A DNA stretch of 64,000 nt, taken from sequence record ON287372.1; one strand, given 5' to 3'. Of this stretch, positions 1,902 to 37,791 are shown in pieces. The notes below the pieces were generated by a model, which was given only the letters and a program-made list of their open reading frames with translations, searched no databases and was not told the DNA's origin. How positions within the stretch are numbered: position 1 is the stretch's first letter; each line of letters begins with the position of its first letter. The position numbers were made by a program, and so were the translations under genes.

Positions 1902-3236
1902 TCAAACCTTCTCGAGATAAAGCATTAGGGCAGCCGCACTTTTCATCGTGTTAGACATTAGCCCAGGTTGCTCTCCAGTCCATTGTTCATTGGCCTGAAT
2001 TAAAACCCCTTCCATTAACGTAACGTTCCCGCCATTATCGTAGTAGACTCTGACAGGCATCCCTGGAGTAAGCAGTCTGATATCTGACCGTTGCCAGGTT
2101 GTTACCATAAGCATACCACGCTTACCTGAAAGATCAGACTGGACTTTAGCAAGGTTATCAGTAACCCCGCGAACTCCCGCCAATGCGCGCTTATCTGCAC
2201 GTGGCTCAGCACCAATGTCTGCACTGATATCCTGACGGTTATAGACAGATTGGTTATTGTCGTTAATCGCAGGCTTATCCAAGAACCCAGAGGCTCGGGT
2301 AAAGTGGATTGCAGTCTCACCGTTAATGCTGTTTGAGACGGAGAGGTCTTGCATCTTAACCGCACCTGCGCAAACTACCGTAATCTCCTCACCAACCTTC
2401 TTGAAAGAACGATCGGATGCAGGGATCATCAGAGATGAGCTCTGGATGATGGTCAATCTACGTGTTGTGGTCTTAAACCGGCGAGTATTGAACAATGGGT
2501 AAACGTACCAACGCTGGTTTTGAATGAACGACCCGATACCGTGATTATAAATCCCGTTTATCTCATCCTGAAGAAACGCAGCCAGACCAACCATCCGGAT
2601 GTTGTTCTCAATAACTAGATCCTGGATCACATCAGTAGGTTTATCGTTATCTGGATCGACAACATCTAACGAAACGAGCTTAGGTAATCCTTTAGCTGCA
2701 TCTTCATTGGTCTGAGTGATGATCATAGACTTCAGAACTTCAACCGGTTTAGCGTACCGGAATATGCCCTGGGCATACTTGGTATTCATTGAGACAGCGA
2801 TAGGATCAACCAACTGGATACGTAGCATTCTCAGCTCATCTTTACCATCCGTGTAAGGGGCATTAGTTACAGATGAGTCAGAGGTTAATTGGGCAGCGGA
2901 GTTATCTTTCAGGATAACGCGGAATGCGGTAGTGTACCGTAAACCAGAAGTCAACAGAGTACTGGAGACAGGGTCGACTTGTTCCTGAACCAGTGTAGCG
3001 TTCAAGTTGTCACGGTTAGCGTACAGCAAGTTATAGTCAGCTGTGATGACTGCGATATTCATTTCGGTGTCATGAGTAAAACTCGTGACGTAATCAGACT
3101 CTGTGTATTTCTCAATAACACGAGTCACTTCCAGCTTTCGATTTGGCAATGTGAAAATAAGACGGAACCGGAATCGGGGATAACTCCCCGACCCAGCTAT
3201 CTCCATTGCCTGTTTTCTCAACAGGGCAGCATTCAT
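1902..3236 (-). CDS. Virion structural protein, probable baseplate hub-like (phiKZ gp101-like position)
   Basis: 444 aa, last gene of the conserved structural operon; assignment by synteny and size. Confidence 0.5.
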   Translation of the reverse strand: MNAALLRKQAMEIAGSGSYPRFRFRLIFTLPNRKLEVTRVIEKYTESDYVTSFTHDTEMNIAVITADYNLLYANRDNLNATLVQEQVDPVSSTLLTSGLRYTTAFRVILKDNSAAQLTSDSSVTNAPYTDGKDELRMLRIQLVDPIAVSMNTKYAQGIFRYAKPVEVLKSMIITQTNEDAAKGLPKLVSLDVVDPDNDKPTDVIQDLVIENNIRMVGLAAFLQDEINGIYNHGIGSFIQNQRWYVYPLFNTRRFKTTTRRLTIIQSSSLMIPASDRSFKKVGEEITVVCAGAVKMQDLSVSNSINGETAIHFTRASGFLDKPAINDNNQSVYNRQDISADIGAEPRADKRALAGVRGVTDNLAKVQSDLSGKRGMLMVTTWQRSDIRLLTPGMPVRVYYDNGGNVTLMEGVLIQANEQWTGEQPGLMSNTMKSAAALMLYLEKV

Positions 3237-3802
3237 TTATAGAAGTTCCTTTTACGTACTGGACCGAAATCAATACGCTCATTAACTGGAACGTAATCTG
3301 CAGCTCTACGAATCTCAATATCGCTCTTAGGCTTAATGAGGGTAGGGCTGAAATCAACGTAGCCTTTAAAGACATTGTGAACCTCAGGCATCTTGGCAGT
3401 TCTGACTTTGTTGTAGATGTGCCGACCAAGTTCATCTAGTGATTGGAGATCACGTAGACGTTCTTGGGTGATTGCAGGATCTTCAATGTGCATACTACGA
3501 CTGATTGACTTCATGTAAACTTCAACGTCGTGAATGTGCTCTTGAATGATCTTGTGCATACTACTGATTGCCTTCATCCCCTCTACCATCGTGAACTCTG
3601 AACCAGCTTGGTAAAGATCCAACAATTGGTTGATGGTACGCCATACACGAGTACGGCGTTTAGATGCCATCTGATCTAACAGAGATGAGCCCGTTGTAAA
3701 GCTGCCGCGATGACCGACCATATTCTCATCGACCGCATCGTACTCGTACATCTCTACGTTGAACGGCTTATGGAAAATTAAGTACCCGGCGGAATAACTC
3801 AT
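3233..3802 (-). CDS. Conserved phiKZ-like protein in virion operon
   Basis: 189 aa, ATGA-type overlap with neighbours. Confidence 0.7.
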   Translation of the reverse strand: MSYSAGYLIFHKPFNVEMYEYDAVDENMVGHRGSFTTGSSLLDQMASKRRTRVWRTINQLLDLYQAGSEFTMVEGMKAISSMHKIIQEHIHDVEVYMKSISRSMHIEDPAITQERLRDLQSLDELGRHIYNKVRTAKMPEVHNVFKGYVDFSPTLIKPKSDIEIRRAADYVPVNERIDFGPVRKRNFYK

Positions 3803-29489: not shown

Positions 29490-29552
29490 GGCAATTTCCT
29501 TGAGGTATAGTTTGTTACATAGAATTACCGCCCGTTGCCAGGCGGTCTTCTA

Positions 29553-29882
29553 TTAGATTGGTTTAATGGGCGAACCATTATTGGGATTTATGCCCGCTTT
29601 CTGCAATGCGTCTTTCGTTGCATTGTCATCTTCGCTTCGCCAGCGAGTACAGCAGAGTTTAACCATTTCGATAATGTCATTGTCCATGTTAATGAATTCA
29701 GCAAAGGACATGTTCAGTTCTTTACCTACTTCATGCAAACGGAAGAACTCCAGTAACTCAACGTATTTACCTTTGTTCGCCGCTGCTTCTACACGGTGCA
29801 TCTCAATAATCGAATATGGATTACTCCGGTCGTACTCTTCTGAATAAATCCCGTTGTCGAGGTCATATGCACGACGTAGCAA
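29553..29882 (-). CDS. Tail-chaperone C-terminal extension ORF, probably reached by -1 frameshift
   Basis: Only a TTG start with a poorly spaced RBS; frame is open from 30104, across the T7 run of the upstream gene. Confidence 0.55.
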   Translation of the reverse strand: MLRRAYDLDNGIYSEEYDRSNPYSIIEMHRVEAAANKGKYVELLEFFRLHEVGKELNMSFAEFINMDNDIIEMVKLCCTRWRSEDDNATKDALQKAGINPNNGSPIKPI

Positions 29883-29923
29883 TATCTTACTCTGGAGACT
29901 CCCTTGTCCAAAGTATTTCTCTA

Positions 29924-31663
29924 TTACTCCGGTTGCCCGCTCTCCGAGACCCTGGTTACCAAAGCGCTCACTCCTAATGTCCGGAGATTTGTCAGTGGAA
30001 TTCCACCCGAGACGTGGATCCTGTGTTGAGCAAGGGTAAAAAAACCTGTAGCGGGGTTGAACGGAACAATAACCGTGCTCTCTCCTTTTTTGTTCAGGTG
30101 ATACTTACCGCAGCTCGGGCAGGATACGTTAGGGAAGCCAACGATAGCGCCGATGGAGTCATTGACGAAGTCATTGATTGCACCCATCAGTTCTGCTGCG
30201 CCTTTGGTATCGGCCGCCATTTGACGAAGGACGTTAATGATGGTGTCCATGTCTTGGATCAAGTAATAGCCGCCTTCATGGTCTTGAGAAGGGACTTTGA
30301 TTTCCTTGATGTAATGAGCGAACCGGCACAGGTCTTCGGTAGACAATGCCGACTGGATTGCAGCTGCACGGCTCTCGCTGTCTTCGTAAGCTGAACGCAG
30401 GGACTCAGACAATGCGCGGTTAATGGAGCTGATCCACTCACGGCCACGGGCCAGGTACTCATCTGCCGACGGATCGTTAAAGTAGAAAGTACGGCCGTTA
30501 TATACCCAGCTAGACGTGTTCAGAATTTCGAACTCTTCGTGATACGCTACCAAGTCATCCGGTTTAGATTGTACGTGGGAACCACGGCCCATCAGAACCA
30601 GTTGTTTAGCAGTGAAACGAGATTCGTCTACCCAGAACATACGCAGCGGGTTGGCGTGTACCGTTTGTACATCGTGACACTCTGCACATGGGATGGCGAT
30701 TGGAGTGCCGTCAGGGAATGCCGACATTGCCATACCCCAGATGATTACCGGGATGTCGTTCTTAGAGATGAACTCTTTCAACTCCAGCGGGTTCTTAGAG
30801 AACGGCAGAGTTGAATGCGTCACCAGCTTCAATGCTGCATCGAGCAGGATCTCATCGAACACCAGGGAATCGTTAGAACCTACAGCGCCGTTTGTATCCA
30901 GGCCAATCTCTTCACGAGAGAATGCCAGAGCACGGTCGATCTCTGCCAGGTAAGCGCCAGTAGGTGCGCGCATGGTCAACCAGAAGCCGGAGTGCCACAG
31001 AGGGATCTGTACGGAGCGGCCCAGATTAGTGCCTGCCATGAACAGGTCGACTGCACCGTGACCGGATACAACCGCACCTTGCTCTTTGGTCAGAGCGAAT
31101 TTATTACGGCGCGGACCCAAAGGGATGGAGGAGTTAGCCTGAGTCAGGTATTGCTTCCAACGACTACCAATACGGGTAGTGGCTTTGATCAAGCCTTCAC
31201 CTGGGAACGCAGTATCCTGCGCCGCAGTACCCGTTAACAGGAACGGAAGAATGTCGATGTTGCTACTCTCTTCGTCCGTCATGCGTTCAGTTTTGTTGTT
31301 GAAATCATCCCGAGTAGTGCTCAGGATAGCCATACCAGACTGTACGCCGGTTTTAGAATTGATCAGATGATAAACATCATTCTGAACCGTTAGCGTGTCT
31401 TCTTCTACATTGTAGAGTGCATCTTCGGCAGGCTCTTTGATTTCCTTAGGAGTTTCTACTTCCTCCTCTTGTGCAGGCGCTTCCTCAGACGGCGCTGGTT
31501 GTTCAACCTGCATCGTTGCTGGAAGTTCCTCTGATTCGATTTCGTAATCTTCGAAAACGTTACGTTTAGGAACATCAATCCCTGAAGCGGTGTCCAGAGG
31601 CTTAGTTTCTGGCTGATCCAGGGAGGGAGTAGCGTCGCTACCTTTTTCTAAATCGGTGCTCAT
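29924..31663 (-). CDS. Putative tail/baseplate assembly chaperone (T4 gp26 / lambda gpG-like)
   Basis: 579 aa; CAEC and CPSC Zn motifs; ...PATGFF near the C-terminus encoded by GGT TTT TTT. Confidence 0.5.
   Translation of the reverse strand: MSTDLEKGSDATPSLDQPETKPLDTASGIDVPKRNVFEDYEIESEELPATMQVEQPAPSEEAPAQEEEVETPKEIKEPAEDALYNVEEDTLTVQNDVYHLINSKTGVQSGMAILSTTRDDFNNKTERMTDEESSNIDILPFLLTGTAAQDTAFPGEGLIKATTRIGSRWKQYLTQANSSIPLGPRRNKFALTKEQGAVVSGHGAVDLFMAGTNLGRSVQIPLWHSGFWLTMRAPTGAYLAEIDRALAFSREEIGLDTNGAVGSNDSLVFDEILLDAALKLVTHSTLPFSKNPLELKEFISKNDIPVIIWGMAMSAFPDGTPIAIPCAECHDVQTVHANPLRMFWVDESRFTAKQLVLMGRGSHVQSKPDDLVAYHEEFEILNTSSWVYNGRTFYFNDPSADEYLARGREWISSINRALSESLRSAYEDSESRAAAIQSALSTEDLCRFAHYIKEIKVPSQDHEGGYYLIQDMDTIINVLRQMAADTKGAAELMGAINDFVNDSIGAIVGFPNVSCPSCGKYHLNKKGESTVIVPFNPATGFFTLAQHRIHVSGGIPLTNLRTLGVSALVTRVSESGQPE
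30038..30044 (-). other. Candidate -1 ribosomal frameshift heptamer U UUU UUU
   Basis: A7 on plus strand; in-phase X XXY YYZ heptamer; -1 frame continues into the 29553-29882 ORF. Confidence 0.6.
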
Positions 31664-32061
31664 TCGGTTGGTTCCTTGTCTTCGGTAGATAGTACAATAT
31701 CAGAGCAAATTGCCAGCGGCTCTAATACGGCTGGTAGTTTATTTACAAACTCGATTACGTTAAGTTTGTATTGACTGAAATCAGTCCCTGGAGGCAATGC
31801 TTCCAAGGAGGTTTTGAATTTGGCCAGATTAGTGGCAAAGGTATTGAACAGCGGGCCAATCGTATGAATAGCTCCGGAGAATTCTTCTACCTTATCTTCA
31901 GGTATTTTACCTTCCGTTTTTAACGACGTGTAATAAGCCATTAACTTATAAACGTCGACGAGTTTCTGACGGATCGATTCGATTGTATCGAAGACTTCTT
32001 TACGGGCAGAAGTTTTGGTAACCTTCTTTACTTTATTACGAGACTTGGTACTTACAGGCAT
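31660..32061 (-). CDS. Hypothetical protein
   Basis: 133 aa, 4-bp overlap with the downstream gene. Confidence 0.75.
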   Translation of the reverse strand: MPVSTKSRNKVKKVTKTSARKEVFDTIESIRQKLVDVYKLMAYYTSLKTEGKIPEDKVEEFSGAIHTIGPLFNTFATNLAKFKTSLEALPPGTDFSQYKLNVIEFVNKLPAVLEPLAICSDIVLSTEDKEPTE

Positions 32062-32154: not shown

Positions 32155-33003
32155 GTGATCTTAGAAGACCTAATGAGTTTCATCGAAAAGACGAACTCAC
32201 CTGAAAGGGTATCGGCATATAAAGGGTTACTCCCTTTCTTAATGCAATTAGACCCCTCGCTAATGGAAATGAACCTGTCTCAGTTCGTCGGGTTCATGGA
32301 CGATTACGATACCATCAATAACCGTGAGCAATTGGATAACTTCCTTATTCAGGTTGTTTCTGAAGGTATTGAGGACTTCGGTATTTATCTTTCCGAGTCA
32401 GCCGATTACCGCGACTCCGTATTCCTTCTTGGAGACACCTTACGTGCTCTTTATCGTGTTGACCAATATGAAGACATGGCTGCATTGACTTCTATCCTTG
32501 AGGACGGAGTGAACGCCAAAGAGACGGTAGTTGAGATCCTCTCGGCTGTTTCTCCTGAACTGGACGTAAGCGCATTGCTCAACTATATCGATGAAGTATC
32601 GAGTTCCCTGGTGCGTCGTTGGAAAGATTCGTTCGCTGATCTTTCTTATCAATTCGATGATCAACTTCCGGCAGCAGAACCTCTGTTGGTAGAACGTGTT
32701 CGTCTGGCTCTTCAAGATCTCCAAATCGAAAGTGCACGTAACTACTTTACGGAAGGCGGTGTCATCGGTGAGCCTATCGATAACTACCTCGATTATTACC
32801 TGGGTTATCTCAAACCTAAGGATGATGTCATCCGTGCTAAGTTTGCGTTGTTCTCCGCCATCGCTGCTGATGCAGCTGCCGATGAAATTCGTTCTATTGC
32901 TGGGGCCAAAATGGAATACTATTATTCCGGCGCCGAGCTACTGAACGTAACACGTAAAATCTCTACCCTACCTTTACCGGAGTTCGTCTATGCTCAAGCG
33001 TGA
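32155..33003 (+). CDS. Conserved phiKZ-like protein upstream of virion RNAP beta'
   Basis: GTG at 32155 with GAGGG RBS preferred over TTG 32077; TATG at 32117-32120. Confidence 0.7.
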   Translation: MILEDLMSFIEKTNSPERVSAYKGLLPFLMQLDPSLMEMNLSQFVGFMDDYDTINNREQLDNFLIQVVSEGIEDFGIYLSESADYRDSVFLLGDTLRALYRVDQYEDMAALTSILEDGVNAKETVVEILSAVSPELDVSALLNYIDEVSSSLVRRWKDSFADLSYQFDDQLPAAEPLLVERVRLALQDLQIESARNYFTEGGVIGEPIDNYLDYYLGYLKPKDDVIRAKFALFSAIAADAAADEIRSIAGAKMEYYYSGAELLNVTRKISTLPLPEFVYAQA

Positions 33004-34378
33004 TTATTTCCTTAAAGCGCTTCGTGCAGGTGCTTATCGATACAAGGAATGGATGGTCGAATGTTTCGCTATGGTTTCCTTGCCCGAGCGTCCACAACTC
33101 GATCGTATTATTACCGCACAGGCTTTAATGGCAGAGGATCCTTACAGTAAGATCGTTTACTCTAACGAACCTGAGCGCTACTCCTTTGAACGCTATCCTT
33201 ATCAGCTGTTTAAAGAAGATGATAAAGTCGTGTTCTTCGATCGCGATGCGCAGGCCTGGGAACCTCTCCAAGAAGTCCGATTGAACTATCCGTTCTTCCG
33301 GTTCAAGGATGAGATTAGTCTCTCTAAAGGCGACCTAGTTAACGTAGATCGTGATCTCGTCACCTGGTACGGAAACGTAGTAGTAAACCAAACTATCCTC
33401 TGTCACTCTTTCGGTGCTACGATTCCGTTCATGGCCGGTCAAATCAAAATCGGTGCGGTGGAATCTAAGATTGCGGAGTTACTGAACTCTACGCCGGAAG
33501 AAGGCGCGGAACGCGATCCTACCAAGATCTATACGGATGACCTGGAAAAGAAATATTATCAGGCTGCCTATTCCGTAACGGGCTGGTGTCAAATCGCCAC
33601 CCCTGCCGCTACGCCATACACCATCCTTACTGATCCACGTATTCATCAGCGTCGTAAAGAGCTGTTGGAGCAATACAAAGGTCAAACTCACGATGCGACA
33701 GTTGTAGCGAAGATCATGGCTGAGTTACGTGACATGGACAAAGCGTTCCAAGATCAAGACCCTGAGAAAGGCTTCTTGAAGAACGGTAAGGACTTTGACA
33801 TCACGCGTATGAAGTCTTACGTAATGCACGGTATCGAACGTGACTTTAACGATCCGAACAAGATCACTGTTATCGATCGATCCCTGGCAGAGCAATGGGA
33901 CATCAAACGTTTACCGCAGATGGCTAACTCCCTGATTGACGGCTCGTTTAACCGCGGATTCTTGACAGCGCTAGGTGGCGAGGCAGCGAAGTTCCTGTCT
34001 CGTTTCTTCCTGAACACCAACATCTCTGAGGACGATTGCGGTTCCGTACTTGGGATAACTCACCTAATTGATAAAGACAATGCCGAGGGCTACTACTGGG
34101 CATACGCATTGGTCAATGGTAAGATGGTTCAGATTACGCCGGATAACGTTTCGGAGTTTTACGGAAAAGCCACTGTAATGCGTTCTCCGCAGTTCTGTAA
34201 TACCGTTGATGGTAACTTCTGCGTGAAGTGCCTTGGTGAGCGCTACGTCGATTCTAAGCAGGCTCTGAGCTCATTAGCAACCGAATCCGGTAACGTACTA
34301 ATGAATATTTTCATGCAGTCCATGCATGGAAAGGCAGTTAAGGTTGAGAAATGGAATTGGCAACGTGACTTATTCTAA
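32990..34378 (+). CDS. Virion RNA polymerase beta'-like subunit, C-terminal part (phiKZ gp80-like)
   Basis: EDDCGS and MRSPQFC...FCVKCLG Zn-site motifs of beta'; LMNIFMQSMH trigger-loop-like segment. Confidence 0.85.
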   Translation: MLKRDYFLKALRAGAYRYKEWMVECFAMVSLPERPQLDRIITAQALMAEDPYSKIVYSNEPERYSFERYPYQLFKEDDKVVFFDRDAQAWEPLQEVRLNYPFFRFKDEISLSKGDLVNVDRDLVTWYGNVVVNQTILCHSFGATIPFMAGQIKIGAVESKIAELLNSTPEEGAERDPTKIYTDDLEKKYYQAAYSVTGWCQIATPAATPYTILTDPRIHQRRKELLEQYKGQTHDATVVAKIMAELRDMDKAFQDQDPEKGFLKNGKDFDITRMKSYVMHGIERDFNDPNKITVIDRSLAEQWDIKRLPQMANSLIDGSFNRGFLTALGGEAAKFLSRFFLNTNISEDDCGSVLGITHLIDKDNAEGYYWAYALVNGKMVQITPDNVSEFYGKATVMRSPQFCNTVDGNFCVKCLGERYVDSKQALSSLATESGNVLMNIFMQSMHGKAVKVEKWNWQRDLF

Positions 34379-34419
34379 GTCCGTCTAGCCAAAAAAAATA
34401 GTTAACGCGAAGAATAGTC

Positions 34420-34451: not shown

Positions 34452-35798
34452 CTATTTCTTAATTAAAGGGTCTTTATCTGATCCAACGTAATACGTGTTG
34501 GGATGATTAGTGGGATGGTTCATTTTATCCGACAACGTACTATAATGCTTACCCAAAGCGTCGGCGGCTAGACGTAGAGAGCCGTAATGTACTCCATCGA
34601 CTACGACAGCTTTCGAAGTAGTGCGGATTAACTTACTATCGTCTTCTATTTCTACTTTCTCCCAATTAGGGAATCTATTATCCTGGGCTCTCCTGACTAC
34701 AGTAGATGAAGAAACTCCGTAAGCCTCTCCAGCTTCAGCTGCGGTAAAAAATACTTTACCATCTACCCGATAACCAGTCCGGTCTGAGCTCTTAGCGACT
34801 GTCTCTGAAACTTTTCCTGATTTAACATCGGGATCATGTTCAGAACCGATCATGTACCACCCTGGGTAATTTTTATTAACTAACCTACGAGTAATACTAG
34901 ACTGGTTGATACCGAGAATACGAGCACACTCTGAAGCAGATGGATACTTAATCCCATCGCCCATGATTGCTTTGGAAATAGCAGTGGCTGTATTCCGGAT
35001 ATGTTCCTCGGAGTTAGGTCTACCTTTCCGTACTTCAGACATCTTGCGTTTAGTTTCTTCGGAAGCGACTTTACCCATCTTAGCTAGAGACATTTTACGG
35101 CGTGATTCTTCAGATTTAGGTACCCCTAAAGCAGGTGCCTCCGCAAGATCTCCTATGTTAAATACCGGTTGCTCTTTCTTTATCTGAGACAAAGCAACAT
35201 TCTCTAACCAGAAAGGAGTCATGGTTTCAGTGGTGCGAATAAGAATAACTTTTATCTTATCGGTAGGTTGGCCACTGAACAAGTTAAAGGTCTTCTGCAG
35301 ACTGCGGTTGTGGTGTTGGTTAGACTTAAGGGCGTTCTTGTGCTCCATTAGTCGCTTGTAGATATTGTAACTTGATCCAATGTACACTCTATCCACATCG
35401 TTTAGCTGGAGTATATAGACGCCAGCGAAAGCGCCCTCGGAGCGCGAGAACCCGAAGTCCCCCATCAAGTCATCTATCACCACCACATCCACAATCTTCT
35501 CGTAGTCTCCATCATCGAAGATCGTCTCCCTGGTGTTAATCATAAACTCCGACCCAGAGACAAACGTTACCGAAGGCGGCAGATTAGCCAGGGGGACTTC
35601 CCCGTCTAAGTTCCAGCGTTCGGTATTAAAGAGATTCATGACCTCTTTTAGTGCACCCGGTAATACAACCTTAGGATTACGAAGTGCATTGATTGCAATC
35701 GTCATCAGAAGGTCATAAACCCCTGGACCAGGTTGGCCCAGGAGTAATTTACTTTTTACAATTAAAGCGGCATCTTCCGCCAGTATTAATTTACTCAT
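34452..35798 (-). mobile_element. Free-standing GIY-YIG homing endonuclease with NUMOD3- and NUMOD1-like repeats
   Basis: GVYILQ...VYIGSSYNIYKRLMEH; SEESRRKMS/SEETKRKMS repeats; three C-terminal HTH-like repeats; AT-rich. Confidence 0.88.
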
Positions 35799-37073: not shown

Positions 37074-37718
37074 CTAACATACTATCTTAGCTTCCAGTAT
37101 CTCGAGTACCCAATCCATTATAAACGTTAGTGTTTTGCCTCTGATATTCATTACCGGTATGTTACGATCTACGGCTAATTTAGTAGCCGTGCGGGTACCG
37201 CCCTTAGGCAATCCGTTCTTATCCTCATCGGCGCAATAGAGGACGAAGAGGGACGGTGAGTTCAGATCTTTGCCTAATGCTTGGTAAACATTACGGACAT
37301 GGAACTTACGCTGTGCGTCAGTAAGTCTATCAAAGATCGGATGGATCGTTGAACAAATCTCAGAAGCTTTATCGTAGTAATCCATTTCCCAAATGGCGTT
37401 TTGATCGGATGTATTTGGGTTACTGATTTCAAACTTTTTCCAAGGCAAGTAAATCTCCAGTGGTGCTAAAGGGAGATTGTTCAAACTACATTTATGGTTG
37501 GAATATTCCACACCTGCCTGGAATGCCTGGTCTGATCCAGGTGCTCGACCTGAACGTACTCCGATTCTGAAAGTAATGGAGATTACCGAGGCGAGCATTT
37601 TCATTAAGGAGAATTCCTCCTCGGTCACTTCAGTAGACCCGATCCCAGTGAAGAAGTATTCTTGTTCAGGATTCATCTTATTACAGATTGCTCTAATACG
37701 TTCAACTTTACTTGTCAT
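37074..37718 (-). CDS. SLOG-superfamily (DprA/Smf-like) protein
   Basis: FTGIGS..., RSGRAPGSDQAF, GGTRTATKLAVDRNIPVMNI. Confidence 0.75.
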   Translation of the reverse strand: MTSKVERIRAICNKMNPEQEYFFTGIGSTEVTEEEFSLMKMLASVISITFRIGVRSGRAPGSDQAFQAGVEYSNHKCSLNNLPLAPLEIYLPWKKFEISNPNTSDQNAIWEMDYYDKASEICSTIHPIFDRLTDAQRKFHVRNVYQALGKDLNSPSLFVLYCADEDKNGLPKGGTRTATKLAVDRNIPVMNIRGKTLTFIMDWVLEILEAKIVC

Positions 37719-37759
37719 TGAAAACCTCCAAAAAAAAAGAAATAGTTAATTAGATGAAG

Positions 37760-37783
37760 CAGAGTACCCCGAAGGGTACTCTG
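37760..37783 (-). terminator. Hairpin terminator, copy 2 of the 24-bp repeat
   Basis: Identical to 34420-34443. Confidence 0.75.
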
Positions 37784-37791
37784 CGATTATG

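Follow-up and report, generated by a model that had tools for sequence, protein, structure and literature searches.

In Serratia phage vB_SmaS-Totoro (ON287372.1, genus Moabitevirus, 278,767 bp), two adjacent minus-strand open reading frames (ORFs) are likely joined by a programmed ribosomal -1 frameshift at a U_UUU_UUU heptamer, a reading that we base on sequence comparison across the phiKZ gp77 family of nucleus-forming jumbo phages. We analyzed a stretch of 64,000 nucleotides (nt) from this record (the window, whose coordinates are used below unless another locus is named); the region considered here is 100% identical to Totoro. ORF1 (TOTORO_03010, 31663..29924, minus strand) encodes the zero-frame, or short, product of 579 amino acids (aa), and ORF2 (TOTORO_03000, 29882..29553, minus strand), annotated as a 109-aa protein from a TTG start, is the proposed C-terminal domain of a long product. 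The Totoro record in GenBank carries the two as separate coding sequences (CDSs), each labeled "hypothetical protein." The proposed shift site, T_TTT_TTT in the DNA (30044-30038, minus strand), is read in the zero frame as GGT TTT TTT ACC and is in phase as X_XXY_YYZ. The whole open -1 frame spans 30104..29553 (minus strand; 183 sense codons and a stop, 184 codons), and the first ATG, GTG, or TTG in it is the TTG at 29882. The predicted long product has ~703 aa, made up of 542 codons to the site and 161 aa from the -1 frame. A sequence-only reading of the window had already pointed to the in-phase heptamer, the -1 frame open from 30104, the TTG start, and the 542 + 161 layout, and all of these are present in the DNA.

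In the mechanism that we favor, most ribosomes would keep to the zero frame and terminate 37 codons past the site, completing the 579-aa protein, and a minority would slip back one base with two tRNA-Phe on UUU UUU. The slipped ribosomes would read the -1 frame through the nominal intergenic gap (41 nt, 29883..29923, minus strand), which would be coding in that frame, and on through ORF2. Their product would comprise ORF1 residues 1-542 and a 161-residue extension, the latter consisting of a poorly conserved linker, in which one short motif is conserved, and then the helical ORF2 domain, and the frequency of frameshifting would set the ratio of short to long protein. That a trans-frame ORF1-ORF2 product is made through -1 slippage of some kind, whether ribosomal or transcriptional, is very probable from the comparisons described below; that ribosomes are responsible is a narrower claim, which we weigh against its alternatives further on.

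Conservation of the slippery site

ORF1 is a homologue of phiKZ gp77, PhiPA3 gp074, 201phi2-1 gp136, and EL gp47, and ORF2 is a homologue of PhiPA3 gp073 and 201phi2-1 gp135. Homologues of ORF1 occur in 217 phage records (tblastn), and a profile search returned 1,726 cluster representatives of the family; the best 150 of these 1,726 are 403 to 657 aa long, and the homologue from SPAsTU has 687 aa. Our locus sample comprises 84 loci (9 GenBank phages and 75 IMG/VR contigs) in 44 clusters at ≤50% identity; counts by cluster treat lineages as independent, and the P values given for them are somewhat overstated. Six close and middle relatives were compared with Totoro individually, namely, Moabite, FBKp24, KpLz-2_45, Ea277G, SPLA10, and PCH45 (ORF1 identity, 82% to 30%).

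In Totoro and all six relatives, the zero frame reads GGT TTT TTT A in phase, and from the site onward the -1 frame, where the ORF2 homologue lies, is open. The same layout extends to the whole sample: the -1 frame is open for 150 to 203 codons past the site in 84 of 84 loci, and the zero frame stops 11 to 44 codons past it. A hidden Markov model (HMM) of the ORF2 family, built from -1-frame pieces of the Totoro clade, matches all 84 -1-frame pieces and none of the reversed controls. The full heptamer T_TTT_TTY is found in 73 to 74 of the 84 loci, and its A-site portion, T_TTY, is found in every one. The length of the T run varies from 5 to 9 across loci (T6 in 11 loci) and its phase is invariant. 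Judged from these sequences, all sampled members of the phiKZ gp77 family, which belongs to the nucleus-forming jumbo phages (Chimalliviridae), have the arrangement.

Codon choice at the site distinguishes, at the sequence level, a putative recoding signal from a conserved Phe-Phe motif. The codon preceding Phe-Phe ends in T in 39 of 42 clusters (background, 0.28; P = 1e-18), and this same codon specifies at least 11 different amino acids across clusters. The first Phe codon is TTT in 41 of the 42 (background, 0.39; P = 4e-16), and the second is TTT in 30 and TTC in 12. By these counts, the heptamer is fixed at positions 1 to 6 and more variable at position 7, in line with what X_XXY_YYZ predicts. 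Within the window, runs of T7 (and A7) are depleted, with 8 matches representing 5 separate runs versus 21 ± 5.8 expected from shuffles. Because T7 is depleted here and the heptamer is conserved at synonymous positions across the family, its occurrence at the end of ORF1 goes beyond chance.

Coding signature of the -1 frame

Directly past the site, an overlap segment of 37 zero-frame codons (29927..30037, minus strand) carries both the conserved tail of ORF1 and the start of the -1 extension. This zero-frame tail is conserved among Totoro and its six relatives, and the overlap in their clade would therefore code in two frames, consistent with a suppression of synonymous change in it. Measured as identical codons as a share of same-amino-acid codons, in the overlap versus upstream, this suppression is evident for Totoro/Moabite (0.88 versus 0.54, P = 0.001), FBKp24/KpLz-2_45 (0.89 versus 0.50, P = 0.0002), and SPLA10/PCH45 (0.74 versus 0.42, P = 0.03). 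The tail is 37 to 44 codons long in the Totoro/FBKp24/PhiEaH1/PCH45 clade (loci L001-L007) versus 11 to 19 codons in all other lineages (L008-L084), which makes the long two-frame overlap a feature of this clade. Farther along, in the 41-nt gap, Totoro and Moabite differ mostly by third-position changes or conservative replacements with respect to the -1 frame.

Conservation in the -1 frame also reaches ahead of any codon from which ORF2 could start. An alignment column with 91% conservation of Phe (residue 26 of the Totoro -1-frame piece) lies past the ORF1 stop and before any ATG, GTG, or TTG in 23 of 44 clusters. The first possible ORF2 start codon is found anywhere from 2 to 151 codons past the site in the 84 loci; several clusters have none before the conserved ORF2 domain, and the annotated ORF2 starts in the relatives of Totoro vary in both codon (TTG or ATG) and place. 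The first start codon in Ea277G comes only after the conserved motif with which the ORF2 domain begins. In KTN4 (species Phikzvirus phiKZ), the site reads ACT TTT TTT ACT, the same heptamer as in 201phi2-1, and after 10 more codons the zero frame stops. No start codon occurs in the KTN4 -1 frame until ~86 codons past the site (91 from the start of the open frame), and because the first one is so far downstream, the annotated KTN4 ORF2 has only 80 aa. Between the two annotated genes, KTN4_103 and KTN4_102, lies an unannotated gap of 218 nt (positions 3103-3320 of KTN4 locus L086) in which the -1 frame is open and encodes conserved ORF2-family motifs. Direct observation covers the site and the open frame, the conservation of both, and the signature of coding in the -1 extension.

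No natural in-frame fusion of ORF1 and ORF2 was found among 163 family proteins. Matches of 686 to 687 aa in BFVD were considered as such fusions and rejected: the SPAsTU homologue (687 aa) has a longer N terminus and a separate ORF2. No joined ORF1-ORF2 CDS was found in the 13 GenBank records examined.

The sequence-only reading had proposed a programmed -1 shift joining the 579-aa gene to the next ORF, and this proposal is borne out by heptamer conservation at synonymous sites, an open and homologous -1 frame, conserved residues ahead of any start, and suppression of synonymous change in the overlap. That reading would have been given up if the heptamer were not conserved, if close relatives had stops in the -1 frame, or if ORF2 were initiated independently with no fusion product; checks on these three points yielded nothing that refutes it.

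Probable ribosomal slippage and its alternatives

We infer that slipping is by ribosomes rather than RNA polymerase; this reading fits best, given that conservation applies to the in-phase heptamer and not to how long the run is. According to one study, frameshifting has as its mandatory motif a Z_ZZN tetramer or an X_XXZ_ZZN heptamer (PMC4066793). Several points weigh against this reading. The evidence for the putative frameshift is comparative throughout. About 10 of the 84 loci have an imperfect heptamer (G_TTT_TTY, G_GTT_TTT, or A_CTT_TTT, with G_GTT_TTT in 3 loci). The loci were found partly by a peptide pattern containing Phe-Phe, which can inflate conservation at the amino acid level but not at the codon level; in A3, an alignment made without the pattern, F541 is invariant and F542 is at least 90% conserved. 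In Escherichia coli, U_UUU_UUU is reported to be much less shift-prone than A_AAA_AAG (PMC5009743), and a low frameshift frequency would therefore be expected, as for lambda G/GT.

No stimulatory element was found either. The usual stimulator is a structure 5 to 9 nt downstream or a Shine-Dalgarno-like sequence upstream, neither of which is obligatory. In the window, the 98 nt past the heptamer fold no better than shuffles (z = 0.22); across 42 clusters, folding of the 70 nt downstream gave no conserved structure (mean z, -0.37), and Rfam gave no family match for a stimulatory RNA. Inspection by eye in the window and in FBKp24 found no Shine-Dalgarno-like stimulator upstream. The sequence-only reading had singled out a TCCAC/GTGGA hairpin downstream of the site (30002..30021, minus strand), in which 30018-30014 pair with 30006-30002 as part of a longer stem starting at 30021. 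We set this candidate stimulator aside: it begins 16 to 19 nt past the heptamer, which is too far, its stability is that expected by chance, and it is conserved only in the closest relatives.

That no RNA structure stimulating a ribosomal shift was found also fits transcriptional slippage, in which phage or host RNA polymerase adds one U at the T run and the same protein results. The site is a homopolymer (T7 in the window, T8 to T9 in 25 of 84 loci), and the second Phe codon, with which the site ends, is somewhat more often TTT than TTC (30 of 42 clusters, P = 2e-5), both of which would suit a slipping polymerase. In addition, E. coli genes are reported to avoid UUUUUUU whatever the frame, with transcriptional slippage as a possible cause (PMC4066793). 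However, 16 of the 84 loci have only T5 or T6, yet all keep the A-site T_TTY in the same phase, and no run occurs in any other phase, though polymerase slippage is indifferent to phase. Productive transcriptional slippage sites are usually runs of 8 to 9 or more, which also counts against a polymerase-based origin, and we consider it rather unlikely.

The separate annotation of ORF1 and ORF2 in all 13 GenBank records examined, the presence of an ATG in Moabite at the place of the Totoro TTG, and the conservation of Phe-Phe at the protein level would each fit a locus with no recoding at all, where ORF2 is translated alone, from TTG 29882 or by reinitiation, and where the heptamer and open frame are by-products of a Gly-Phe-Phe motif. 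Such an account is highly improbable: amino acids cannot account for codon choice at the site, the first start codon may stand anywhere from near the site to far beyond it, conserved -1-frame residues precede every possible start in 23 of 44 clusters and also in KTN4 and Ea277G, all 84 loci have ORF2 in the -1 frame, and the overlap shows suppressed synonymous change. A variant of the frameshift reading would yield three products, with ORF2 expressed both in the fusion and alone in some lineages, including Totoro and Moabite. The conserved ORF2 domain does begin at a start codon in Totoro (TTG), Moabite (ATG), SPLA10, and PCH45, but the position of the first start is not conserved, several clusters lack one before the conserved domain, and the Totoro TTG has no clear Shine-Dalgarno sequence upstream; we judge this variant improbable. 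Ribosomal -1 frameshifting into a two-product output remains our preferred reading.

Predicted properties of the ORF1 and ORF2 proteins

An AlphaFold2 (AF2) model of ORF1 has a mean predicted local distance difference test (pLDDT) score of 86.7 and a predicted template modeling (pTM) score of 0.82. In this model the shift site falls inside a helix (residues 537-551), so that the long form would lack the helix's conserved end. For the -1 piece, modeling gave a poor result (pLDDT, 48) that was not used. Cysteines 326, 329, 515, and 518 of ORF1 are invariant in 120 family members and make up two CxxC pairs ~190 residues apart, which probably form a zinc site; weak matches to YgiT-type zinc fingers were seen in 7 of 90 family members (NCBIfam).

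Searches by sequence gave few leads to function. Pfam returned nothing significant for ORF1, the -1 piece, or either neighbor, PHROGs matches were limited to 4585 and 8054 (both families of unknown function), and a sequence profile search of the PDB found no match. Foldseek comparison of the ORF1 model with the PDB gave nothing at E ≤ 0.001. Against BFVD, chimallivirus homologues of ORF1 ranked first, and next came entries under the names "Baseplate hub assembly protein, bacteriophage T4-like" and "baseplate hub subunit" (E, 3e-5 to 8e-4; target TM, 0.40 to 0.56). The four BFVD proteins named for hub assembly (284, 312, 251, and 260 aa) had E values of 3e-5 to 1e-2 and target TM scores of 0.40 to 0.52, and these targets are themselves predicted structures only. 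Among Pfam families, only PF12322 (T4_baseplate) drew matches from more than one relative out of 90 (2 members; best E, 0.0087), and two GenBank records label ORF1 homologues "baseplate hub" or "baseplate protein."

In T4, gp26 and gp51 are hub assembly chaperones (PMC3004832). Our best guess from the predicted fold, a lead with modest support, is that ORF1 may be a baseplate-hub assembly chaperone of this type. In 201phi2-1, the neighbors gp138 and gp139 carry a flag for detection by virion mass spectrometry, but gp135 and gp136 do not; the ORF1 protein would be a non-virion assembly factor. The label "chaperone-like" that the sequence-only reading gave to ORF1 finds indirect support in the remote fold match to T4-like hub assembly proteins and none from a match to a Pfam chaperone family. 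Identity of ORF1 with PicA/Imp1 was considered and rejected: PicA is phiKZ gp69 (PhiPA3 gp63), and ORF1 matches PhiPA3 gp074 and phiKZ gp77.

Genomic setting and other T runs in the window

ORF1 lies among homologues of phiKZ gp75 to gp80, which include a helicase and a virion RNA polymerase subunit, and adjoins a DNA polymerase gene. Its neighbors are homologues of phiKZ gp78, gp79, and gp80 (virion RNA polymerase), an acyltransferase, and a DNA polymerase. The gene immediately upstream (31660-32061, minus strand; 133 aa) stands at the place of the phiKZ gp78 homologue in relatives and overlaps the ORF1 start by 4 nt (ATGA), which suggests translational coupling of the gp78 and gp77 homologues; its KTN4 homologue is noted as a putative virion-associated protein. 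Directly after the ORF2 stop, a GC-rich, terminator-like 8-bp hairpin (29527-29546, minus strand), without a classical T tract and with an equivalent in Moabite, probably closes the ORF1-ORF2 unit.

The two longest other T7 runs in the window, both on the minus strand, were examined and fall between genes. At 37730-37790 (minus strand), a T9 run stands ~20 nt past a perfect 11-bp hairpin and precedes GGAGG and the start ATG of a 214-aa ORF (37718..37074), an arrangement that looks like an intergenic terminator and ribosome binding site. A T8 run at 34391-34398 (minus strand) lies in a 73-nt gap between two convergent genes (32990..34378, plus strand, and 34452..35798, minus strand) and is probably part of a terminator. 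The second of these genes is annotated as an endonuclease, and the Moabite record names its homologue an I-TevI-like homing endonuclease.

Novelty and implications

Literature searches on frameshifting in phiKZ, Chimalliviridae, and jumbo phages found no description of an ORF1-ORF2 shift; mentions of "gp77" in this literature refer to the numbering of other phages. According to the sequence-only reading, no such shift is known to have been described for phiKZ-like phages, and these searches agree with it, as do the 13 GenBank records, which keep the two CDSs separate. The mechanism is a known one, and what we describe is a new instance of it, in a core gene of a much-studied phage family.

As a model for phage cell biology, defense evasion, and therapy, the phiKZ-like nucleus-forming phages attract much study, and their core genes are being cataloged. 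If the frameshift is real, one of these core genes has a larger second product that is missing from every genome record examined, and the 218-nt "intergenic gap" of KTN4 is coding sequence. Essentiality screens, proteomics, and localization studies that treat the two ORFs as separate would then need rereading. The family would also offer a clean, family-wide -1 frameshift on U_UUU_UUY without an obvious stimulator, useful for studies of bacterial recoding and for phage gene callers, and the remote likeness to T4 hub assembly chaperones would be the first testable idea on the function of the gp77 family.

A broader proposal, which we put forward tentatively and with distinctly less assurance than the frameshift, is that all nucleus-forming jumbo phages, phiKZ included, make an unannotated core protein of ~650 to 850 aa that in most lineages could be obtained only by a -1 frameshift in the gp77-family gene, its downstream domain never being expressed alone. 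The short and long forms might then be a hub or tail assembly chaperone pair held at a frameshift-set ratio, a counterpart of lambda G/GT on a T4 gp26/gp51-like scaffold.

Comparison with known systems

The layout of ORF1 and ORF2 resembles that of lambda gpG/gpGT, P2 E/E+E′, and Mu gp41/42, tail assembly chaperone genes of tailed phages with a conserved -1 frameshift, in which two products share a common N-terminal part and the longer one carries an extra C-terminal domain. As in G/GT-type genes, the -1 frameshift would lie near the 3′ end and yield an extended second product, and even relatives whose sequences are no longer recognizably similar retain the layout. The lambda protein binds the tape measure through its G part and the tail tube protein through its T part (PMC5009743). 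The differences are also considerable. G/GT-type chaperones have ~100 to 150 aa, whereas members of the ORF1 family have 403 to 687 aa; the ORF1-ORF2 pair does not lie between tail tube and tape measure genes; and the heptamer of the ORF1 family, unlike that of G/GT-type chaperones, is U_UUU_UUY. The likeness to lambda G/GT and P2 E/E+E′ suggested by the sequence-only reading thus holds for the recoding layout and fails in other respects, the gene being 4 to 5 times longer, differently placed in the genome, and matched by no Pfam family.

The predicted fold of ORF1 is a remote match to proteins named for T4-like hub assembly, the role that gp26 and gp51 have in T4. ORF1 is more than twice as long as T4-type hub assembly proteins and, unlike members of PF12322, has no sequence match at the Pfam threshold. 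No frameshift is known in the T4 hub assembly genes; internal initiation yields a second product of T4 gene 26.

T7 gene 10A/10B is similar to ORF1 in that a -1 shift near the end of the gene gives a minor, C-terminally extended form, and its site is of the G_GUU_UUC type, like the G_GTT_TTT variants found in 3 loci of the ORF1 family. Unlike ORF1, gene 10 encodes a capsid protein, its extension is short and is not a separate conserved domain, and the shift is not known to be conserved throughout a virus family. E. coli dnaX (tau/gamma) and the ORFA/ORFAB genes of insertion sequences (IS) share with ORF1 a -1 shift at an in-phase heptamer that fixes a product ratio, as would be the case here. 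The dnaX and IS sites are A_AAA_AAG with clear stimulators (an upstream Shine-Dalgarno-like element, a downstream hairpin, or a pseudoknot), none of which was found at the ORF1 site, and the shift shortens the product of dnaX, whereas it would lengthen that of ORF1.

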